A stretch of 64,000 bases of DNA from the NCBI GenBank assembly GCA_033442325.1, contig JAWQFM010000009.1, forward strand, positions 1,467,672-1,531,671. The letters are read 5' to 3'. Under the pieces are notes generated by a model. The model did not search any database and was not told the origin of the DNA. It saw nothing but the letters and a program-made list of their open reading frames with translations. The DNA is from Salpingoeca rosetta (lineage: Eukaryota; Protista; Choanoflagellata). Below, one piece after another: positions 21,141 through 38,195 of the stretch (position 1 is its first letter; the number at the start of each line of letters is the position of its first letter). Both the position numbers and the translations under genes were made by a program.

Positions 21141-21240
21141 NNNNNNNNNNNNNNNNNNNNNNNNNNNNNNNNNNNNNNNNNNNNNNNNNNNNNNNNNNNN
21201 NNNNNNNNNNNNNNNNNNNNNNNNNNNNNNNNNNNNNNNN

Positions 21241-22177: not shown

Positions 22178-24895
22178 TCAGGTTTCGGACACATTGGCCA
22201 GCACGGGTGACTGGTATGTGCGCATCCCATCGGGCATTTCAGATTCGCGCGCGACCTGGGCGTAGATTGGACGTTCAACGCCTGTTGTGTTGTAGGATGT
22301 TTCGTCCCATGCGTGCAGGGTCGCAGGAGCGACCGTTCGAGTTTGATCTGGCAAAGGCAATGCACCAGTAATCGAGCAAGAGCGACAGTGAACTTCGCAC
22401 AGGAGAATTGAGACGAGGCACTTGGAAGCGCGAATGTAGTTCAGAGATTGACGCCATTTGAATCCATAGGTGGGTGCTTGCAAGCTCGCATGCAAGCAAG
22501 AGGCGATGTCTGAAGCAACACGCCCACAATGTTCGTGTTCACTACACAAAGTCAGCATGCACAAGCGGACATGCGCCAAGGCTAGCACACTCGCTTCTTT
22601 GTGTACTCGAATCACACCTTCATCTGCAGGGGTGGCGTAGTGGAAGCCTTCATAGGCCGGGTTGACGAAAATATCGCCCACGTGGTTGTCCGCTGCAAGG
22701 TCAATCTTTTCAGCCGGCTGAGGAGGGGAGGAGTGCGCCCATGTCATCAACAAGCAGAGTAACACAGCGACGTGAGAAAATGGCTGCAGCAATGAAGAGG
22801 GGGCTCATCATTCCAGGCAGCGAACAAATCACAGATATACAGAAGAAACTGCAGGAGATTGTTTGCCTTGGGGCACTGACCCGACTTGTTGCGACATCTT
22901 AAGATCTTACTCTTACCATAGGCCGGCGATTGCTCTTCTTTGTGCGCACCAGTATCAAAGCCGAAGCGACGAGACCAACCTAAGCATTCGAATGTGATCA
23001 GATTCGCATGGGCAGACAGACGAAGGCAGGTGAAGTTGCGTCAAGAATATGTCACATCATGCCACACGGGCCCAAAACAACACGTTTTCTCCAGTCAAAC
23101 ACAATCGCGCAAACCTGAACAAATGCATTAGCTCCTTCATCAAAACGCGCAGGATGTTTTTACCACAAGCAAGAAGCCACCAACTGCTGCGCCAATGATG
23201 ACGCCCGTTGATGCGCTGCTGGCGCTGACATTGCTGGGGCTAGACGACAACGCATCAACCACCACCATGCGCACGGCGACACCCGTGTTGCCGTTCGCAT
23301 CCGTCACCGAGTACTCAATCTCGTACGCCCCCGCCACGTGCACGTCAATCGCATCGGCCCCGCGCACCACCACACGCGACGTCACATTGCCGTCGTGCAC
23401 ATCCTGTGCGCTGTACCCAGCCTCCACATATCGTGTCGCATACGGCACGTGCACCTCCTCCGCGCCATACAGCGTCACCTCGGGCGGCGTCGTGTCCACC
23501 ACCACCACCGCCCGNNNNNNNNNNNNNNNNNNNNNNNNNNNNNNNNNNNNNNNNNNNNNNNNNNNNNNNNNNNNNNNNNNNNNNNNNNNNNNNNNNNNNN
23601 NNNNNNNNNNNNNNTCCTCCTGCTTCTCTGCTGAGGCACTACATGGGTGACAGCATACGCGGCAACATCAGCCACGCTCCCCACTGCAAGCACACCCGTC
23701 GCATTCGCCGTCACCACACTCACGTTCACGCACACATTCCCACTCACATCCCCATCGTGCGCATCGTGCGCCGTCACCCCAGGATCAGCAAACGCACCGC
23801 TACCATCTTCACCTGCACCTTCCTCACCATCACCACCACCACTGCTGCTGCCACCGCCAAACTCAAGCTGCACAAGCTGCTCACCAACAAGCTGCATTGT
23901 CGGCGCACTCCCATCCACAACGCGCACCACCCGCTCCACGTGCGCCACGTTGTCGGACGCATCCGTCACCGTGTAGTTGATGCGGTACACGGTGCCGCTC
24001 GGTGCACTGGCTTCAACCGCGTCCAGCGCAGGCGAAGGCCACACCCGTGGTGCCACGCTCGGCACAAAGTCACGCGCAGACGAGTGCACGCAGCTGCTCG
24101 CGGCTGCAGCAGTGCCCACCGTCTGCGCCACCACTCTCACCTCCACACGCGGCCGCACATCACCATCTGCATTGTCGTACGCACTCGCAATGCCCGGCTC
24201 TACCCAGCCCACACCGTCGCCAACAACCGTGTCCAGCGCGCCATTGAGGCGGACGTCTGGCGGCGTCGTGTCAATCACCGTGATCTCCCGCGTGATGCTG
24301 GCCGTGTGGTTTGACGTGTCGCTCACGGTGTATGTGATGTTGAATGTGGCGGGGACGCTTGCTGGCTGCGCCGCATACCCGCCGTCATCAATGCTCAGGC
24401 GCAGCTGTGACGGTGCGTTGTACGCGTCAGACACGTGCGCGCCCGGGTCGATGTCAGCGAGCTCGCTGCCGGCCTCAACCTGCAGCTGGGACGGTCCAAC
24501 CAGCTCAATCGTGGGTGGCTGCGTGTCCACCACTGTCACCGCACGTGATGCGTTGTTGCAGTTGCCCGCCTTATCGCATGCCGTGTACTCCACCGTGAAC
24601 ACAGCCGGTACCGACGCCGGGTACACGTCGACGGTGTTGAGGGTGGTGATGTCGATGGTCCGCTCAAGCGCATCCTCAAGCAGGTCTGACGCCGTTGCTC
24701 CTGCGTCCACGTATTCCGTCCCAGCCTCGTGCGTCACAGATGGGTCGCCAGTGATGGTGACAGTAGGCGCCATCGTGTCCACGACCCGCACCACATATGT
24801 CACGGTGGCCAGATTATCTGACGCGTCGGAGACTGCATACGTAAACGCAAACGTGGTGTCGTCCTCCACGAATGGCCTGAACCGCTGCATGTGCG

Positions 24896-24936
<41 letters not shown>

Positions 24937-27400
24937 GTGTTGTGTGTGTGTGTGTGTGTTGTTGGGGGGGGGGGTTGTTGTTGCGTGTGACGAGATATGA
25001 GTACGATGCTCACTTGGATGAATGTCATGCAGTGGCTGTGACCAGGTCATGCTGAGGTGCTGGGTCCGGCGCGTGCGCGTTTACACGCACCCATCAGCAC
25101 ACACACACACACGTGAACGTGAACGTGAAGGACAGCAACAAAGTACGCACATGCACATGTACACATATGCAAACACACACGCACACACACACACATACAT
25201 ACACGCACACGTGCATCCAACCACACACACACACATCCACACACACACAGCCCTTGACTCACCGGGAACTCTGCAGAGATGACGCTGGAGGAGTTGATGG
25301 TGGTGTCAAAGGAGTCTGAGGCAGTTACAACGGGGTACACGAACGTGATGGCGGCCTCGTGCCAGACTTCGTTGCCTGCATGCACCTCTCGAAGACCAAA
25401 GTCAACCCGCAGGTCCTGTCACAATATTGACGCAGAAACGCACTGGGTTGAGAGTCGGTTCTGATTGCGCAGTTACAGGGTGTCTAGAGCGTATGCAAGA
25501 AGCCTCATATAGCAACTGTAACAATCGCCAGAACGACCTTCAGATCAACCACACGTACTGGCTTTGTCGTGTCTTGGACGATAATAGTCCTGTTTGTTGC
25601 CTGTACAGGGTTGCCAGCTTCGTCTGCTGCGTTCAGCCAGTATGAGAGTTGGTACGATCCCAGACTTGAGACGTTGATGTCGTTCATGCTGTACTGCAGC
25701 TGATCCAGGTCAACAGATAGCTCTCCGTCCACGTTGTCGACAAGGCAAACGCCTTTGGTCAAGTTGTGGCGTGTCGGTGACTGACCAGCTTCGAGCCTCA
25801 GCGTTGGTGGATCAAAGCTAATTTCTGGGCCTAGGGTGTCTTCAACCATAACGGTGATGGTGCGTGTGGCTGTGTTGCTTGCGGCATCGACTGCCATGTA
25901 CGTCAGCGTCCGCGTAGCATGCAGGATATCTGCAAGTGGGGCGAAGCAGCACACCGCAATCAAGCAGGGTGAGCACAGATATGCAAGTAAGCCAACTGTG
26001 GTAATGAGAACTGTGCGCGCGCAAAGCCTTGGGAGCTAACTCGGTATTACACGCATGTACCACAACGCTACGACGTGCACAACAGACGTCGTCACACATA
26101 GTGCCCCCAACCCATTTGCTCGTTCTTTGGCGTACCTGTCGATATGTTGGTAATGTTCGCAGGGGGAATGAGTACAACCGCACCAGCGGCAGTGTCGACG
26201 GCGCTTGCGAGAGGTGGCGAAAACGGAAGCCCAAAACCTGCGGTGTAAGTGTCGCTGCTCTTCAAGAGCACGTTCGTGCCCGGGTATCGGAGCTCAATGG
26301 TGGGTGGCTGGATGTCTACACGCAATTGGCACAATGCGAACGGGTTGAAGGGTGAACGTTGCGCCACGAGACAGCATAGTGGGTGTTGTGTGTATGTACA
26401 ATCCGTGAGGATTGTGTGTATGTGTGTGTGTGCCTGTGTGTGTGTGTGTGTGTGCCTGTGCCTGTGCATGCGTGTGGGTGGGGGGGGGGTTATTGTTGTT
26501 GTTTTATGCTCTCCTCTTGGTAAGTTCACAGGGCACACCACTCCTTCTTCTGACCTTCGCATTTGCCGTTGGCAACCTTGGTGCAGAGAATTGTCTCATC
26601 ATAGCCGGTGGGACAAACGACACAGCTCTTGCAGCTGGCACTGGAGTGTGAGGAAGCGTCTTGATACTTGCCTGCAGGCAAGCACACCGAGAAGCAGAGA
26701 AGTGAGGGTGAATGAGCGGACAGTTGTGGGAGGAGTGCAGCATGACTAGCATGTGTGATTGAACAGAATGCACGCCACATCTTTCACCACAACCGGAGAC
26801 AATCAAGTCTTCAACTACTACCAGCACCTGTGCCTTTTCACAGCTTCCACAGAAGCATCCATGTGCAGAAATACATGTTCAAGAGCACACGCCCGCATGC
26901 CTGTCTGCTTGTGGCTTTCACCCAGCACGCGCCTGCGTGCGCGAACACACCTTGCTGGCATGGAAGGCAAGAAACGCTGCCTGCTCTCTGTCCCCGCCCG
27001 CACACAATTGGATGCGCTTCAACTGCTTGAGCACGCAGCGGAGGGACAATCAATGCACATGGATGAAGGGACATGAACATCGAGGGAATCGAAGCGGGAA
27101 GGAAGACGGCCATGAGTTGCCGTGCATGTTCGAGTCTGAGCTACGGCGGAGGTGATACCGGGGACGAGAGCAACCAAATCACGTGATAACACTCTGTTGG
27201 ACGTTCATCGCACAAGCGCACAGTCGCATGGTTGCTTTTCTCTTCTTCATCGCTGCTGTTTTACACCCACCCCACCCCATCTTGATCAACTTCAAGCTGT
27301 GGCTTACCAACTGGGCGCTGCATGAGTACCAAAGCAGTCACCACTGCGAAGACGGAGGTCGCCCTCCATCTCACTCCACGTTGTTCCTCACAACTCGTCA
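22178..27400 (-). CDS. Type I membrane receptor, paralog B: signal peptide, short Cys-rich region, ~8 HYR/DUF5011 Ig-like repeats, TM helix, Tyr-motif cytoplasmic tail without a kinase
   Basis: Exons: RWRATSVFAVVTALVLMQRPV|VEAHPIVCGRGQRAGSVSCLPCQQG (~27400-26950); GKYQDASSH..CVVCPTGY..C (~26670-26555); DIQPP, DTLGP, DTTKP, DTMAP, DTQPP, DTTPP, DGSAP, DTTPP repeats; TM GVIIGAAVGGFLLV|VGLVASALILV followed by RTKK (23200-22917); tail exons ~22717-22618 (FVNPAYEGF) and ~22347-22178. An N-gap interrupts it at 23515-23614. Start codon is uncertain. Confidence 0.78.
23248..25419. repeat. Near-identical direct duplication of 29456-31675 (HYR stalk exons plus one intron)
   Basis: By-eye comparison finds about 4 substitutions across the ~1.25 kb 23640-24888 vs 29913-31166 segment; the intervening intron is also conserved apart from microsatellite length changes. 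Confidence 0.95.
23515..23614. other. Assembly gap (100 N) inside a coding exon of receptor paralog B
   Basis: N run; the homologous interval in paralog A is 29723-29888 (166 bp). Confidence 1.
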
Positions 27401-27788
27401 TCATCAGCATCGCACGCAGACGCCACAAAGACGCACATCCACACGTCTGAGCGTGGAATTGTGTGCACGCGTTGTGAAAATGTGACTCCTCAGGCGCACA
27501 ACAACTGTCCTGCCAAAATTCCCATACAAACACAACAAAGAGGAGCCATGTGGTTTTCTTTTGCGGGTGACAACAACAAAAAAAAAAAAAAAAGAAGAAA
27601 AAAAAAAAAAAGAGAACACAGCATGATGCCAAGAAGCAAGCGTGCACGTCAGCATGAACACTGACTCGCCAAAGACACCTCGACCTCGATCTCCCTCTCC
27701 GCTGCTGACAATGGACAAAGAGAGACTTGAGCCAAAATGTGTAATGGGAATGTAACAAGTATCCCTTGCCAGGAGGGTGTGGTCCTCG

Positions 27789-30700
27789 CTAAGCCACGGC
27801 ATCCTCGGCGGATTCATAAACATTGTCTTCCACGACTCCCCCCTCTGTCACCACGTCGTACTCTGGCTGCATGTTCAAAATTCCCGTGTCCACATAGCCA
27901 CTCGTGAACGTCGTGTCATAGTCGGCCTCGTCCCACGTATGCGCCGGTTGCGCTTGCAGCACTGTCCATTCATCGCACATTGTGTGGGTGTTGCCGTTGT
28001 TTGTGAGTAACTGTTACGGATCAAACACCAATGAGGCAGTGCAACCATGACATGAAATGACCACTACGACGCAGTAGGCCATGTAGCATGGGTGCATGCA
28101 CAGAGCGGCCCAGCAAGCAGACATGAGCAAGGCCCAAACAAATACCTTTGAGGGGTGCGCCGTGCTCCGATGTTCCTGACACGAGGCGACAGCATCGAAA
28201 AGACAAGTGACAGGGCACCGTGAATGACAACGACAAGATGAACGAGAACTCGAGGCTTTGGAGAGCGAGAATGTTTCACATCACATCGCATCACAACGCG
28301 GCATGACGGAGGCTCACACTCGCAGCCACAGTGTACGCAATTACCCCCCCCCACCTCTTTCTTTCTCCCTCTCACTGAACAAGCAGACCTGTTGTGACAG
28401 CAGTCGCACTCACCGGCAATCTTGCCCGTGTCAAAGTCGTCGGTTCCACAGAATGCAGGGTTGATCGTCTCCAGCCCGTTGTGCGGCACAGACTGGTAAG
28501 GGTTCTGGGCCGCCTCCTACAGCCCCAGCAGCAGAGCAACAAAGCGACACAAGGTGTAAGCCACAAGCTGTGCGAGTACACACAAGCAAGGAACAAACGC
28601 CGAAACCACACAAGAGCACAAGAGATGTGCTTCTTGATGACGTGGTGGCAATCAAACACACAGACATACAAGGCATTCACCATCAGGCATACCAGTGTTG
28701 TTTTCGCCAGCTGCTGACGCTTTGACCGACGCCGAAGCAACGAGACGACAACCACAACCATAGCCTGATGCAAGCACCAAGGTCAGCAAGCAGAGAGACA
28801 GAGAGAGAGAGAGAGCGCAAATCAGTTGTGCAACAAAGGTGTTCACTGCCGTCGTTCCTAATCACCCACCCGAAGAGTGCCCAATCATCAACGTAGCAAC
28901 GACGGTACAGTAATTCAATTCATTGCACAACAAGCGTGCCGTGTCACTCACCACAAACACGACGCCGCCAGCTGCTGCTGCAATGATCACAGTCAGCGAC
29001 ACGCTGGCGTTGCTACCGCCGCTCGAGGTCGATGTGCCCAAATCCGGATCATACGCGGAAGCACTCAGCACCGCGCTTGTCCCCAGCACAACGACTCCAT
29101 CCAAGAGCGTCAGCACCTCGGTAGTGCTCATCCACGCCAGTGTCCCTGGGTCCCGCACCCCAAACTCGACCACAGTCATCTCCGTTGCTGTTGTCATTGG
29201 TACTGCAGCTGGCGTGGATGGCGCCTCCCTTCGCTTGCGCACACTGCTACCACTGCTGACACTGTCGTTGTTGCCGCTGCCGTCGCTTGGACGCCCATCT
29301 GCGCTGTCGTAAACGAGAAACACGACCACAAACTCCACTCCCAATGCTTCCTCTAGATCGGCCTCTAGCTGCGGCACATCGCCACCAAAGATGACCTCCG
29401 CCGTGCCTGCAAGCACCAGCTCCACAACAGCATCCTCATCATCATCGGGTCGGGTCAACGCATCAACCACTACCGTGCGCACGGCGACACCCGTGTTGCC
29501 GTTCACATCGCTCACCGCGTACTCAATCTCGTACGCCCCCGCCACGTGCACGTCAATCGCATCGGCCCCGCGCACCACCACACGCGACGTCACATTGCCG
29601 TCGTGCACATCCTGTGCGCTGTACCCAGCCTCCACATATCGTGTCGCATACGGCACGTGCACCTCCTCCGCGCCATACAGCGTCACCTCGGGCGGCGTCG
29701 TGTCCACCACCACCACCGCCCGACGCACAACAGCAGCCGCGTGGCCCGCCCGGTCCTGCACGCTGTACTGCATCACATACACCGTGCCCACCTCTGCCCA
29801 CGCCACTGCACCCCCAAGCCCCACAACACCCTCACCACCCTCACCACCCCCACCACCCCCACCACCATCACCATCATCATCCTGCTGCTCCTCCTGCTTC
29901 TCCTGCTGCTGCACTACATGGGTGACAGCATACGCGGCAACATCAGCCACGCTCCCCACTGCAAGCACACCCGTCGCATTCGCCGTCACCACACTCACGT
30001 TCACGCACACATTCCCACTCACATCCCCATCGTGCGCATCGTGCGCCGTCACCCCAGGATCAGCAAACGCACCGCTACCATCTTCACCTGCACCTTCCTC
30101 ACCATCACCACCACCACTGCTGCTGCCACCGCCAAACTCAAGCTGCACAAGCTGCTCACCAACAAGCTGCATTGTCGGCGCACTCCCATCCACAACGCGC
30201 ACCACCCGCTCCACGTGCGCCACGTTGTCGGACGCATCCGTCACCGTGTAGTTGATGCGGTACACGGTGCCGCTCGGTGCACTGGCTTCAACCGCGTCCA
30301 GCGCAGGCGAAGGCCACACCCGTGGTGCCACGCTCGGCACAAAGTCACGCGCAGACGAGTACACGCAGCTGCTCGCGGCTGCAGCAGTGCCCACCGTCTG
30401 CGCCACCACTCTCACCTCCACACGCGGCCGCACATCACCATCTGCATTGTCGTACGCACTCGCAATGCCCGGCTCTACCCAGCCCACACCGTCGCCAACA
30501 ACCGTGTCCAGCGCGCCATTGAGGCGGACGTCTGGCGGCGTCGTGTCAATCACCGTGATCTCCCGCGTGATGCTGGCCGTGTGGTTTGACGTGTCGCTCA
30601 CGGTGTATGTGATGTTGAATGTGGCGGGGACGCTTGCTGGCTGCGCCGCATACCCGCCGTCATCAATGCTCAGGCGCAGCTGTGACGGTGCGTTGTACGC

Positions 30701-33464
30701 GTCAGACACGTGCGCGCCCGGGTCGATGTCAGCGAGCTCGCTGCCGGCCTCAACCTGCAGCTGGGACGGTCCAACCAGCTCAATCGTGGGTGGCTGCGTG
30801 TCCACCACTGTCACCGCACGTGATGCGTTGTTGCAGTTGCCCGCCTTATCGCATGCCGTGTACTCCACCGTGAACACAGCCGGTACCGACGCCGGGTACA
30901 CGTCGACGGTGTTGAGGGTGGTGATGTCGATGGTCCGCTCAAGCGCATCCTCAAGCAGGTCTGATGCCGTTGCTCCAGCGTCCACGTATTCCGTCCCAGC
31001 CTCGTGCGTCACAGATGGGTCGCCAGTGATGGTGACAGTGGGCGCCATCGTGTCCACGACCCGCACCACATATGTCACGGTGGCCAGATTATCTGACGCG
31101 TCGGAGACTGCATACGTAAACGCAAACGTGGTGTCGTCCTCCACGAATGGCCTGAACCGCTGCATGTGCGTTGTGTGTGTGTGTGTGTGTGTTTGTGTTG
31201 TGTGTGGGGGGTTGTGTTTGTGTGTGTTGTTGGGGGGGGGGGGGTTGTTGTTGCGCGTGACGAGATATGAGTACGATGCTCACTTGGATGAATGTCATGC
31301 AGTGGCTGTGACCAAGTCATGCTGAGGTGCTGGGTCCGGCGCGTGCGCGTTTACACGCACCCATCAGCACACACACACACGTGAACCTGAACCTGGGCCT
31401 GAACGACTGCAGCAAAGTACGCACATGCAAACACACACGCACACACACATACATACATACATACACACACATACACAGATACATCCAACCACACACACAC
31501 GCACAGCCCTTGACTCACCGGGAACTCTGCAGAGATGACGCTGGAGGAGTTGATGGTGGTGTCAAAGGAGTCTGAGGCAGTTACAACGGGGTACACGAAC
31601 GTGATGGCGGCCTCGTGCCAGACTTCGTTGCCTGCATGCACCTCTCGAAGACCAAAGTCAACCCGCAGGTCCTGTTATGGCAAGAGAGTAATGCTTAAGT
31701 GAGTCACGCTCGCAGAAAGCGTCGACATGGACACCCATCCACACACCCACACACACCCAAACACACCCAAACACACCCACCCACACACACGCACCCACAC
31801 ACGCATTGCCTCCATAGTTCGCTTACAGGTTTGGTGGTGTCGGCGACAATGACATTGCGGACGGACTGTGCTGAAGAGTCCTCTGCCCACAACAGCTCGT
31901 ACAGCACAGTGTAGTTTCCAAGTTGCTGCACACTCACGCTGGCGGGGTCGTACACGAGTCGAGAACTGTTGAGCACGGCATCGGTGGCAAGAACGGTGAC
32001 GCCACGCGTGTAGTCCTCAGCCGTTGGTGTCAGGCCAGCCTCCAGGTGCAGCGTTGCTGGTGAGAAGACGAGTTGTGGTGCATTATCGTCGATGACGTTG
32101 ACGGTGATGGAGATGCTGGCTTGATTGCCAGCCTCGTCCATGGCCGTGTACGCGAGCGCCTGGGTTGAGCCAACGAAGGCTATGTTGAGCGAGAGTGGGT
32201 AAGTGCGTGCGTGAACGTGTGAGAGACTCGGAGGCAGAGGGTGCGTGTGTGTGTCTATTCAAAGAGCAATTGCTGAATTGAAATGGAACGCGAAAGGTAA
32301 GTGTGGGCAAGCAACGCGTGCTTGGGGTCGGTGACGTGAAAGCGGCACGAACAAAGTGGAGACCAAGAGGCGGAGCACCCACCACAAAGAAGAGCAAACT
32401 CGACGTACCAGTGGACACAGAGTCGTACGATGGCTCAACAATTGTGGCGTTGCTGTATGTGTCTGTCGCGGTGACGACTGGGGGCTGAAATTTCATGTGC
32501 TGCACAACCGTGTACACATATGCCGGCCCCTCGATAACGCTGCCAGAATCTGGGCGACGGGCAGTTATCACAGGTGGTGTCGTATCTATCACAAGGAATG
32601 CAAAGCAAAGGCGAGTGAGTTATTGTGTGTGTGTGTGTGTGAATGTGTGTGAATGTGTGTGCGAGTGACGAGCGTGTATGCGTGTGTACGTGTGCGCGAC
32701 AACATTACAGGTGTGCGCGCACATATGAAGAAGACACGCTTCGGTGATGAACATAATAAGATGCAGGTTGATGGGCTCCAAAAACAAACCTTTGCAGACT
32801 GTGTCGGTGGTGGGGGAGCACGCGGGTGAAGGCGAGAGACCCGTCGGGCACGATGAGCACGTCTTGCACTTGCTCAGGCCTGTTTCGTTCGCGTATTTGC
32901 CAGTGGCGCAAGTGCGGCACTCAATCGTACGGGGTTGACTCGCGTAGGTGCCAATTGGACACAGATTGCAGCCCCTCTGGCCAGCAGCATCCTGGAACTT
33001 GCCCGTGGGGCACACTGTGCAGGTGTCTTGGTTTCTGTCGTTCGAAAACGACCCAGCAGCACAGCTCATGCACACTCTGTCGGTTGTTATCGTGGGCAGT
33101 GAAGACACAAACTTGCCCTCGGGACATGGCTGCCACGGACGACAAGTCGGCGACTGATGGCTCGTGCTGTCTTGAAACATGCCTAGCACGTCGAAAGGAC
33201 CGGCAAAGAAACATATTATGCGTTTGTGCATGAGTGAGTGAGTGTGCGTGAGTGTGTGAGTGTGAGTGTGTAAGGCGATGTGGCGTGAGGAACCCAAAGC
33301 GCGCCAGTGGCAATATCCCGGAACAAGGGAGCAGGTACAACACATGCTTTAGCCCTCAGCGCAATGCCAACGTACCGTCGCTGCAGTCTGTGCAGCTCGC
33401 ATCACTGACGGTCAAGCCCACAATCCACCTTTCACCTGCGCCGCAGCTGCTCCAACTCTTGCAC

Positions 33465-33501
<37 letters not shown>

Positions 33502-33801
33502 AGACGAAGTCGTAAATAAAACCATGTGAGCGCCAGTTCCTCGATTGACGACCAGGCCCGCAAGTCATGAGTGTCCCAATGCCATCACTCGTGTTCCATC
33601 ACTACCTGATTGACCAAAGTTGTTTTGGTACTTGCCAAACGGGCACGTTTCACATGTTGAATCTGTGTGCTCAAGCTTATTTTGGTATGTCCCTGCATAT
33701 GCAGATGTGTGCGTGTGTGTGTGTGTGGTTGCGATGGTGCGATGAGTGAGTTCTAGGCTGCGGAGCTGGAAGTCAACAACGTGCACAGTGCTCACGTGCA
33801 G

Positions 33802-33873
<72 letters not shown>

Positions 33874-34127
33874 CGTGTTCAAAGCTGCAAAAGGGCATCC
33901 CACGGTGGCTCACCAGGCAAGCAAGGCAGACACGTTGTGTCGAGCGTGTTCGTTCCTTGTCTGTAGAAGGTACCCGCATCACACTTGCTCCACGGCTTGC
34001 ACGCTGCGTACATCACACGAGAGGAATTGAATGACGGTGCAGTGTTTCGGATTGACTTCGCGGCTCAACCACTCTACCACTCAGCCACTCAAGTACCCTG
34101 CTTCACTGTCGTCGAGATTCAGTACAG

Positions 34128-34165
<38 letters not shown>

Positions 34166-34663
34166 ACTTGCTTGGCCTGGTCTGTCTTGGTACTTTCCAG
34201 ACTGGCAGGTGTCGCACGACTCGTCCAAGTGGTTGTTCTTAGGCTGCACTCTGCCTAACCGAGCGACGGTTGTGATCAATGTGATGTGAGTGAATTCGTC
34301 AGCAAGACACAGAAAAGTGAGCGTGTGTATGAGTGTTTGTGTGTGCATGTGAGTGCGCGAAAGTGTAAAGGCGATTTCATGGTAAGAAGAACCAAGGATG
34401 AGAAGAAGTGAGGAAGCGTCTCAGCCCACCCGGAGCGATCACATCACCACCACCACCACCACCCATTACGAGGTCATGGGTACCCGCTTCCAGTTGGGCA
34501 CTCTTTCACACGCTCACACCGCACCTGGTGGGCATTGGCGGCAACTCATGAAATCGCAGTATTCCCCAACATCACACGAAGCCCAGCAGAACGCTCGTGC
34601 AGTCGGGAATAGTGTGGTGGTGGCCACCGCAACCACAAGGACAGCTGCCACCTGCCACATCAT
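27789..34663 (-). CDS. Type I membrane receptor, paralog A: signal peptide, multiple TNFR/ephrin-receptor-like Cys-rich repeats, ~8 HYR/DUF5011 Ig-like repeats, RKRR-containing juxtamembrane domain, TM helix, Tyr-rich tail
   Basis: MMWQVAAVLVVAVATTTLFPTARA signal (34663); Cys exons CDTCQSGKYQ, CKPWSKCDAG..DTTCLPCLPG, CETCPFGKYQ, CKSWSSCGAG, CRPWQPCPEG..CTVCPTGKFQD..; eight D-x-x-x-P repeat starts; large exon ~31159-28950; TM LTVIIAAAAGGVVFVV|AMVVVVVSLL then RRRSKR; tail exons NPYQSV..INPAF and HTWDEADYD..NVYES, stop at 27789. Confidence 0.85.
29456..31675. repeat. Second copy of the ~2.2 kb near-identical HYR stalk block
   Basis: Matches 23248-25419; identity stops at acag|GACCTGCGG (splice acceptor) on one side and after VVVDAL on the other. 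Confidence 0.95.

Positions 34664-35260: not shown

Positions 35261-38195
<2,935 letters not shown>

Follow-up and report, generated by a model that had tools for sequence, protein, structure and literature searches.

Probable recent gene conversion between tandem receptor-like genes of the choanoflagellate Salpingoeca rosetta, within a family that exchanges exon blocks

We analyzed a 64,000-nucleotide (nt) window of the genome of the choanoflagellate Salpingoeca rosetta (assembly GCA_033442325.1, contig JAWQFM010000009.1, positions 1,467,672 to 1,531,671), which holds two neighboring genes for receptor-like proteins, referred to here as A and B. These appear to be old tandem duplicates between which a block of sequence was recently copied, probably by gene conversion or an equivalent non-reciprocal process, in a receptor family that exchanges blocks. 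The segment that appears to have been copied is ~2.1–2.2 kb long and consists of exon 5, intron 5 and the exon for the third to eighth HYR domains (HYR3–8), and it has the form of a non-reciprocal homologous exchange. The distal two HYR domains, the Cys-rich ends, the juxtamembrane region, the transmembrane (TM) helix and the tails are seen, in the alignments, to retain the old divergence.

The public gene models, mapped onto the window, place both genes and all of their parts described below on the minus strand, head to tail with ~420 nt between them. Gene A is PTSG_04975 (XP_004994293.1, 903 residues; 22178–27369, with the coding sequence ending at 22181, followed by the stop codon) and gene B is PTSG_04976 (XP_004994294.1, 1419 residues; 27792–34663, with 14 model exons mapped exon by exon and scanned against Pfam). 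A sequence-cluster look-up for A and B returned solely these two GenBank models, and a literature search found no paper naming PTSG_04975 or PTSG_04976. Judged from its sequence, each gene encodes a kinase-less type I membrane protein. The common layout comprises TNFR-like Cys-rich modules, eight HYR/DUF5011 Ig-like domains, a TM helix and a tail with Tyr motifs, where the number of HYR domains was counted from a recurring domain-start motif in the public models. Intron positions agree between the two genes, including a phase-0 intron within the TM helix. Pfam family PF16403 (Bact_surface_Ig-like/DUF5011) was matched above its gathering score by an open reading frame (ORF) of B (138 bits) and by ORFs of A (89 and 58 bits), and HYR (PF02494) was also above its gathering score, at 24.4 bits. 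The searches used single-exon references and the public models, with exons never joined. Thus, the head-to-tail paralogs with around eight HYR/DUF5011 repeats and matching introns, proposed in a preliminary description of this DNA, were borne out by the public models, Pfam and the intron mapping.

Two other classifications were considered for these proteins and rejected. Pfam scans of the A model, the B ORFs, the precomputed Pfam list of PTSG_04976 and the family models revealed no kinase family, which rules out the receptor tyrosine kinase class, since no cytoplasmic kinase domain was found. A toxin reading, from the UniRef name "Cry22Aa" carried by PTSG_04975, was also discarded, as the name is only the Pfam label of the Ig-like repeat. 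The best matches of the HYR3–8 rod beyond the S. rosetta paralogs (P0004–P0008) were marine Flavobacteriia DUF5011 proteins (Aquimarina), at 31–32% identity over ~70% of the query.

The homogenized block spans 23248–25419 in A, from four bases of the intron-4 acceptor through exon 5, intron 5 and the large exon to the end of HYR8, and 29456–31675 in B (2220 nt by blastn and sliding identity). Blastn aligned A 23248–23514 to B 29456–29722 at 97.8% identity, and A 23615–25419 to B 29889–31675 at 96.4% over 1810 columns. In sliding windows along a global alignment the flanks are 30–45% identical, which is the random level, and the block exons are 99–100% identical. Exon 5 shows no differences in 153 columns and the large exon seven in 1270, three of which fall within 21 nt of an assembly gap described below. 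The last HYR domain differs at six of 267 positions, and the HYR3–8 proteins at a single one of 416 aligned residues. Intron 5 (A 24885–25262, homologous to B 31160–31518) is 82% identical, with most changes being in the lengths of (GT)n/(CA)n repeats, plus 13 substitutions. In both genes this intron contains a (GT)n-rich 5′ arm and a complementary (CA)n 3′ arm. Outside the block, the flanking introns of A and B are unalignable and the HYR2 proteins are 37–38% identical. The central ~2.2 kb had been described beforehand as near-identical in DNA including an intron, and blastn, the differences counted by sequence class and the silent sites all agree with this. The accompanying claim, of a strongly diverged Cys-rich region, distal repeats, TM helix and tail, holds as well, with the flanks at random DNA identity and a synonymous divergence (dS) of 1.36 in the distal HYR exon.

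The silent sites divide the genes in the same manner. The distal HYR exon has an A/B dS of 1.36 by the Nei–Gojobori method, compared to 0, 0.02 and 0 in three segments of the core and 0.02 in the last HYR domain. At the flank rate, no more than three synonymous differences across 361 synonymous sites would arise with a probability of ~1e-147. Uniform divergence along the two genes was therefore not seen, with dS falling from 1.36 in the flank to 0–0.02 in the core. We give virtually no credence to the possibility that exchange never took place and that extreme purifying selection has held the stalk constant in both genes. The HYR3–8 protein is indeed conserved across the family, at 50–59% identity; however, the synonymous sites and the 380-nt intron are near-identical between A and B too, and in comparisons to the other family members the synonymous sites of these exons are saturated (dS 0.74–1.4). 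Since the silent sites and intron 5 were homogenized along with the protein, selection at the protein level is excluded as the cause. The earlier inference of an old duplication followed by a recent transfer of an exon–intron block is upheld by the drop in dS, by the inclusion of intron 5 and by microsatellites that are specific to each copy.

The two ends of the block are dissimilar. At the 5′ edge, the intron-4 acceptor bases ACAG (A 25419, B 31675) are where identity begins. The step in sliding identity spans less than 50 nt, and upstream the intron shows no more than random identity. Intron 4 lies at the boundary between HYR2 and HYR3, and hence the block corresponds to HYR domains 3 to 8. 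Six differences fall in the terminal 65 nt of HYR8, at the 3′ side, and at several of these A or B matches the other six family genes. For this reason the recent tract probably ends near 23311, and the similarity that continues to 23248 would be older, as expected from family-wide homogenization. Of the two sharp steps anticipated for sliding identity and dS, the one at 25419/31675 was found, while the 3′ side fades inside HYR8 before reaching 23248/29456.

We propose that the tract was bounded by pre-existing homology. The 5′ stop at the first base of exon 5 would be explained because the upstream intron had already diverged beyond alignment. The 3′ side would run into the last HYR domain, which is kept similar throughout the family and would therefore provide a good homology anchor. 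The main alternative, which we consider rather unlikely, is that intron-mediated or illegitimate recombination replaced the exon block. In this case of classical exon shuffling, a double crossover or template switch, broken in intron 4 and where HYR8 ends, would have inserted the B block into an otherwise unrelated family member, or the reverse. Such a replacement would suit a 5′ edge lying within 4 nt of the intron-4 acceptor and the two other block edges of the family that are found at or near splice sites, and the flank divergence (dS 1.36, ~35–40% DNA identity in global alignment) leaves little homology with which to start conversion. However, the product keeps collinearity and reading frame and its two ends are exactly homologous, and the edges lack junction scars, filler DNA or transposon ends. 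The gradual 3′ fade, within a segment that is 93–95% identical family-wide, is likewise typical of homology-guided repair.

The A copy of the block is interrupted by an assembly gap of 100 N (23515–23614), located in the acidic/Gly-rich loop of HYR7. The gap corresponds to 168 nt in B (29723–29890; 56 codons in an open frame) that encode this HYR7 loop and the last strands of the domain, and the reading frames of A on either side of the gap would connect if A had the B length. There are two further 100-N gaps in the window, at 21141–21240 and 37958–38057, the first being set in long (GT)n tracts just downstream of A. We considered whether the middle of A was assembled from reads of the B stalk, such that the real A core is diverged, shorter or absent, and judge this to be very unlikely. 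Such an artefact would fit a scaffold gap that lies inside the A copy, is bordered by error-like differences, and is preceded by 450 nt and followed by 200 nt that are the same as B, with no copy-specific variant; near-identical 2-kb repeats 6.2 kb apart are also difficult to assemble. Against this, contiguous sequence runs across both of the points where unique A sequence meets the block. The A copy can also be told from B by its microsatellite lengths, by 13 substitutions in the intron and by four in exons (24765, 24702, 24690 and 24086), the latter spread over the 5′-most 1.3 kb of the block. Searching the 55.4-Mb assembly by DNA revealed no third copy and no orphan "true A core" that might be an unplaced alternative. 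Furthermore, a neighboring pair of family genes, L012 and L014, repeats the A/B pattern without any gap. The copy-specific microsatellite lengths and substitutions thus indicate two distinct loci, and the combination of differing microsatellite lengths with few substitutions, as expected of two real copies, makes recent gene conversion the best reading.

Several points weigh against this interpretation of the pair. Because the gap lies inside the A copy, the middle of the A block is not independently anchored, and a word search with the A exon following the gap matched no short fragments. The last 21 nt before the gap contain two mismatches and a 1-nt deletion relative to B, which could represent a contig-end error or a true frameshift, and A could thus be frameshifted. 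Had the core and the flanks been equally diverged beforehand, homology-driven conversion would have been inefficient, giving room for another copying mechanism. The annotated first exon of A (27328–27369) encodes no signal peptide. Finally, the function that we suggest below for A and B is read from domains and motifs only.

Outside the homogenized block, the parts of the two genes differ in several respects. The domain order in A is one or two Cys-rich modules, eight HYR/DUF5011 domains, a short Ser-rich linker, a TM helix and a tail with Tyr motifs. B begins with a signal peptide and approximately nine TNFR/ephrin-receptor-like Cys-rich modules, followed by eight HYR/DUF5011 domains, a juxtamembrane domain that we term J, a TM helix and a tail with Tyr motifs. 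The short N-terminal region of A (26556–27369) includes one clear Cys-rich exon (26556–26669) and the annotated first exon. An alternative first exon, from a Met at 27113 to ~26922, encodes a weak signal-like, moderately hydrophobic segment. The Cys-rich module of A scored 18.5 bits for TNFR_c6 against a cut-off of 29.4, and so it appears to be degenerate or reduced. In B, a strong N-terminal hydrophobic region precedes six Cys-rich exons (32791–34663 together with the signal peptide), which are above the gathering scores for TNFR_c6 (47.9 bits) and Ephrin_rec_like (42.5 bits). Thus, the signal peptide previously assigned to both genes is strong in B and a weak candidate in A, whose annotated start lacks one, and the Cys-rich region, given earlier as two exons against around six, does have six in B and two in A, one of the two being clear. 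The exons for HYR1 and HYR2 (A 26137–26316 and 25559–25930, spanning 25559–26316) have diverged from their counterparts in B (32410–32586 and 31827–32180).

Downstream of the block, the TM helix and tail of A occupy 22181–23220, with the first half of the helix ending at 23161, the second half at 22917–22976, and tail exons at 22619–22717 and 22181–22348. The equivalent region of B is 27792–29000, where the first half of the helix ends at 28952, the second half is at 28693–28764, and the tail exons are at 28391–28516 and 27792–27962. An additional exon in the B model, 28147–28257, is doubtful since it resembles a translated intron. The public model of A contains an artificial intron (23476–23636) across the N gap and omits 42 in-frame nt (23811–23852) that are retained in the B model. 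Both public gene models, PTSG_04975 and PTSG_04976, need correction.

Past 23248, A is unlike every relative in having a 15-residue Ser-rich linker in place of the ~120–170-residue juxtamembrane domain of B and the other family genes. The shared layout proposed earlier is incomplete in this regard, as B carries this domain, J, of ~160 residues (28970–29455), and A does not. J is present at exactly seven loci in the genome. It has no Pfam match, and the ESM Atlas returned unnamed clusters below 0.9. AlphaFold2, run with nine sequences, predicted at low confidence (pLDDT 51.6) an element order of β-α-β, a long loop containing RKRR in B, and β-α. The best Foldseek matches to this low-confidence model were the ferredoxin-like MAD domains of cadherin-23 and protocadherin-15, which are weak (E 0.02–0.1). 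Similarly to MAD12 of protocadherin-15 and MAD28 of cadherin-23, the J domain of B is placed after the last Ig-like domain and adjacent to the membrane, and its predicted element order fits the fold. However, the J of B has no sequence-family match, the long RKRR loop is specific to the S. rosetta family, and A has no such domain. From the predicted model, J is possibly a SEA/MAD-like domain that is cleaved at the furin-type RKRR, and we treat this as a lead only.

A and B belong to a family of eight or nine genes which, as judged from DNA identity and dS, has pervasive mosaicism. Searching the assembly by DNA, the stalk was found at 96% identity or above solely in A and B, and the search also returned six further loci. 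These are L011 (from C26:445544), L013 (from C26:293149) and L012 (C13:775202–785201, minus strand), for which no public model was retrieved, and L014 (C13:755838–765837, plus strand; PTSG_05572 and PTSG_05573), L015 (from C15:922377; PTSG_12379) and L016 (from C3:1042672; PTSG_02374). The genome-wide search suggested in the preliminary description thus gave no additional near-identical copies of the stalk, and it uncovered six mosaic family loci. A ninth, more distant relative is L017 (C12:1069000–1078000, L017:178–6351, plus strand), which consists of one frame with seven Ephrin_rec_like/TNFR matches followed by a 1143-residue frame with DUF5011/HYR and two SH2 matches (67 bits).

The A/B stalk is 68–71% identical in DNA to the six loci (dS 0.74–1.4), whereas identity in the last HYR domain is 83–95%; for the A copy of this domain it is 89–95%, with dS of 0.11–0.19 for five of the six. 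This similarity is part of a conserved block of ~500 nt that is found family-wide and covers the end of HYR7, HYR8 and the first half of J (B 29305–29821; gene-sense positions ~7130–7650 in L011–L016). A retains only 23248–23514 of it. DNA identity of this block between B and the six loci is 83–88% (86–88% for five) and among the six it is 85–97%. Between B and these loci, dS is 0.11–0.30 (0.11–0.19 for five), compared to 0.74–1.4 in the adjoining stalk. Over seven genes on four contigs, DNA identity of the block is 83–97% (mostly 86–97%) and its dS is 0.02–0.3, where neighboring segments reach 0.4–1.4. The block is bordered on both sides by low-complexity coding loops. A hot spot of conversion may account for this uniformity, or the sequence itself may be under selection.

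Mosaicism extends to the remainder of the genes. From the dS matrices, the nearest neighbor of L011 shifts along its length: HYR2 is closest to L012, exon 5 and the second core half to L013, and the last HYR domain to L014. Sequence identity between L012 and L015 is 95.8% as far as the TM-intron donor (GTGAGT), past which the two genes are unrelated. Two types of N-terminal Cys-rich array (I and II) join the common stalk within 15 nt of the acceptor of the first HYR exon. L012 and L014, which are convergent neighbors, have 3.5 kb of stalk in common at 95.7%, with differing heads and diverged tails. Segment trees, with only A and B on one side, added little beyond the dS matrices, and the branch from A/B to the family is around ten-fold shorter in the last HYR domain. 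In the core, A and B are equidistant from the six other loci by dS, and consequently the direction of transfer cannot be polarized.

The mosaic identity and the tail swap at the TM intron indicate that modular block exchange is real at the family level. The modular receptors envisaged in the preliminary description are therefore supported for the family, by the mosaic dS, by the Cys-rich heads that join at the HYR acceptor and by the exchange of tails between L012 and L015. We suggest that the same type of exchange as between A and B would operate throughout the family, with nearest neighbors shifting by segment and block edges at or near splice sites. The outcome would be receptors that pair different N-terminal arrays and different tails with a shared HYR rod.

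The tails of A and B were compared to those of their relatives. The A tail contains the motifs NPAY, YATP, HAWDETSY, YAQV and YQSP, and the B tail contains YQSV, NPAF, HTWDEADY and YDVV. The two are 39% identical and have a similar motif order, NPx[YF], H-x-W-D-E-x-x-Y and Y-x-x-V. The "variable output" proposed earlier for the pair was therefore not supported, since these are diverged homologues with the same motif order, indicative of ordinary divergence. Docking-type tails akin to those of A and B are also found in L013, L015 and L016, and the L011 tail appears, by eye, to be similar. L012 and L014 instead have an intronless TM helix and tail of more than 600 residues, with approximately ten (M/L)YDVP(R/K) sites and one or more C-terminal SH2 domains. 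This reading frame runs from J through the TM helix into the tail (L014:7480–9900, plus strand; L012:101–2521, minus strand), and the annotation splits L014 into PTSG_05572 and PTSG_05573. The SH2-bearing L017 on C12 is of the same design. A has two YxxP motifs and B none, and neither contains an SH2 domain; a class of YxxP-repeat/SH2 scaffolds, which L012 and L014 do fit, was thus rejected for A and B. Both tail types are joined to this ectodomain in P0043 (EukProt) and P0124 (JGI metagenome), such that the split between tail types is probably old and the identity of L012 and L015 across it reflects a recent exchange.

A and B are likely, from their domains and motifs, to be surface receptors or adhesion molecules. 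Their tails would be read by phosphotyrosine-binding (PTB/SH2) or endocytic adaptors through the NPx[YF], YxxP and YxxV motifs. Their ectodomains have the same HYR3–8 and differ in the two distal HYR domains and the Cys-rich ends. The view of the Cys-rich end as the sensor and the HYR array as a passive stalk is an assumption of the preliminary description. If the HYR array binds ligand, then A and B share most of their binding surface.

Partial gene conversion between neighboring paralogs of immune-type receptors is known in animals, from Siglec-5/Siglec-14, KIR and LILR. Like A and B, these are tandem Ig-like single-pass receptors in which an extracellular exon–intron block is near-identical with sharp edges, and the remainder, including the tails, differs. 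However, the homogenized part in the animal receptors is the N-terminal ligand-binding domain, whereas in A and B it is the membrane-proximal HYR3–8 and the N-terminal ends differ. The tails of the animal pairs are of opposite sign, an immunoreceptor tyrosine-based inhibition motif (ITIM) against a charged TM helix that recruits an adaptor with an activation motif (ITAM). A motif and composition check found no ITIM or ITAM pattern in the A and B tails and no charged residue in their TM helices. With these features absent and the tails homologous, the likeness to paired receptors drawn in the preliminary description does not extend, for A and B, to the activating/inhibitory type.

Within choanoflagellates, RTKB2 of Monosiga brevicollis also has TNFR-like Cys-rich modules and hyalin-type repeats, crosses the membrane with one TM helix and bears a tail with tyrosine docking motifs (PMC3584944), but it differs in having a kinase plus SCR and EGF modules and RM2 repeats, where A, B and the family models have no kinase domain. 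A closer link to previous work is PTSG_05573, which was singled out as a YxxP-rich transmembrane protein with a DUF5011 domain, and whose tail pYDVP phosphopeptides bind a choanoflagellate Crk SH2 domain in vitro (PMC5043372, Sci Rep 2016). PTSG_05573 is the C-terminal part of L014, with the last HYR domain in common with A and B (dS 0.13–0.15) and J in common with B. In comparison to the YxxP-rich transmembrane proteins, the A and L015 tails keep a YATP site, but the A and B tails are short (100–180 residues), with no YDVP array and no SH2 domain. The family with this Cys-rich/HYR ectodomain, the number of its copies and its mosaic evolution are absent from that study (PMC5043372). The system is therefore not entirely undescribed, as had been suggested, since part of one member was already published.

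What was already known is thus the annotation of A and B as hypothetical proteins and part of one relative. The new elements are the A/B conversion and a defined family, whose mosaic structure has edges at splice sites, together with the swap of tails at the TM intron and the ~500-nt block that is homogenized family-wide. Gene conversion between neighboring paralogs is in itself an ordinary and familiar route of receptor-family evolution. The A/B case is unusually clean, with a dS of 1.36 outside the block that drops to zero within it, and a splice site that coincides exactly with one of the edges. The family also ties the experimentally probed Crk-binding tail of PTSG_05573 to a defined ectodomain family.

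The label of a recognition system is speculation. We regard as unlikely a more far-reaching reading, in which the eight or nine genes form a cassette-exchanging repertoire. Here, recombination near intron borders would keep the HYR rod, and above all the last HYR domain and half of J, interchangeable between Cys-rich heads and docking or YDVP/SH2 tails. Identical rods would let members such as A and B pair laterally, so that a receptor with a docking tail and one with an SH2 tail could co-signal. If true, such a repertoire would amount to combinatorial recognition without kinases in a close relative of animals, and its mode of evolution would be that of animal immune-receptor clusters. More generally, this single genome shows choanoflagellate receptors rebuilt from exon blocks, with heads exchanged at the first HYR exon and the tail at the TM intron, which bears on the origin of the large and varied receptor and phosphotyrosine toolkits in the closest relatives of animals.

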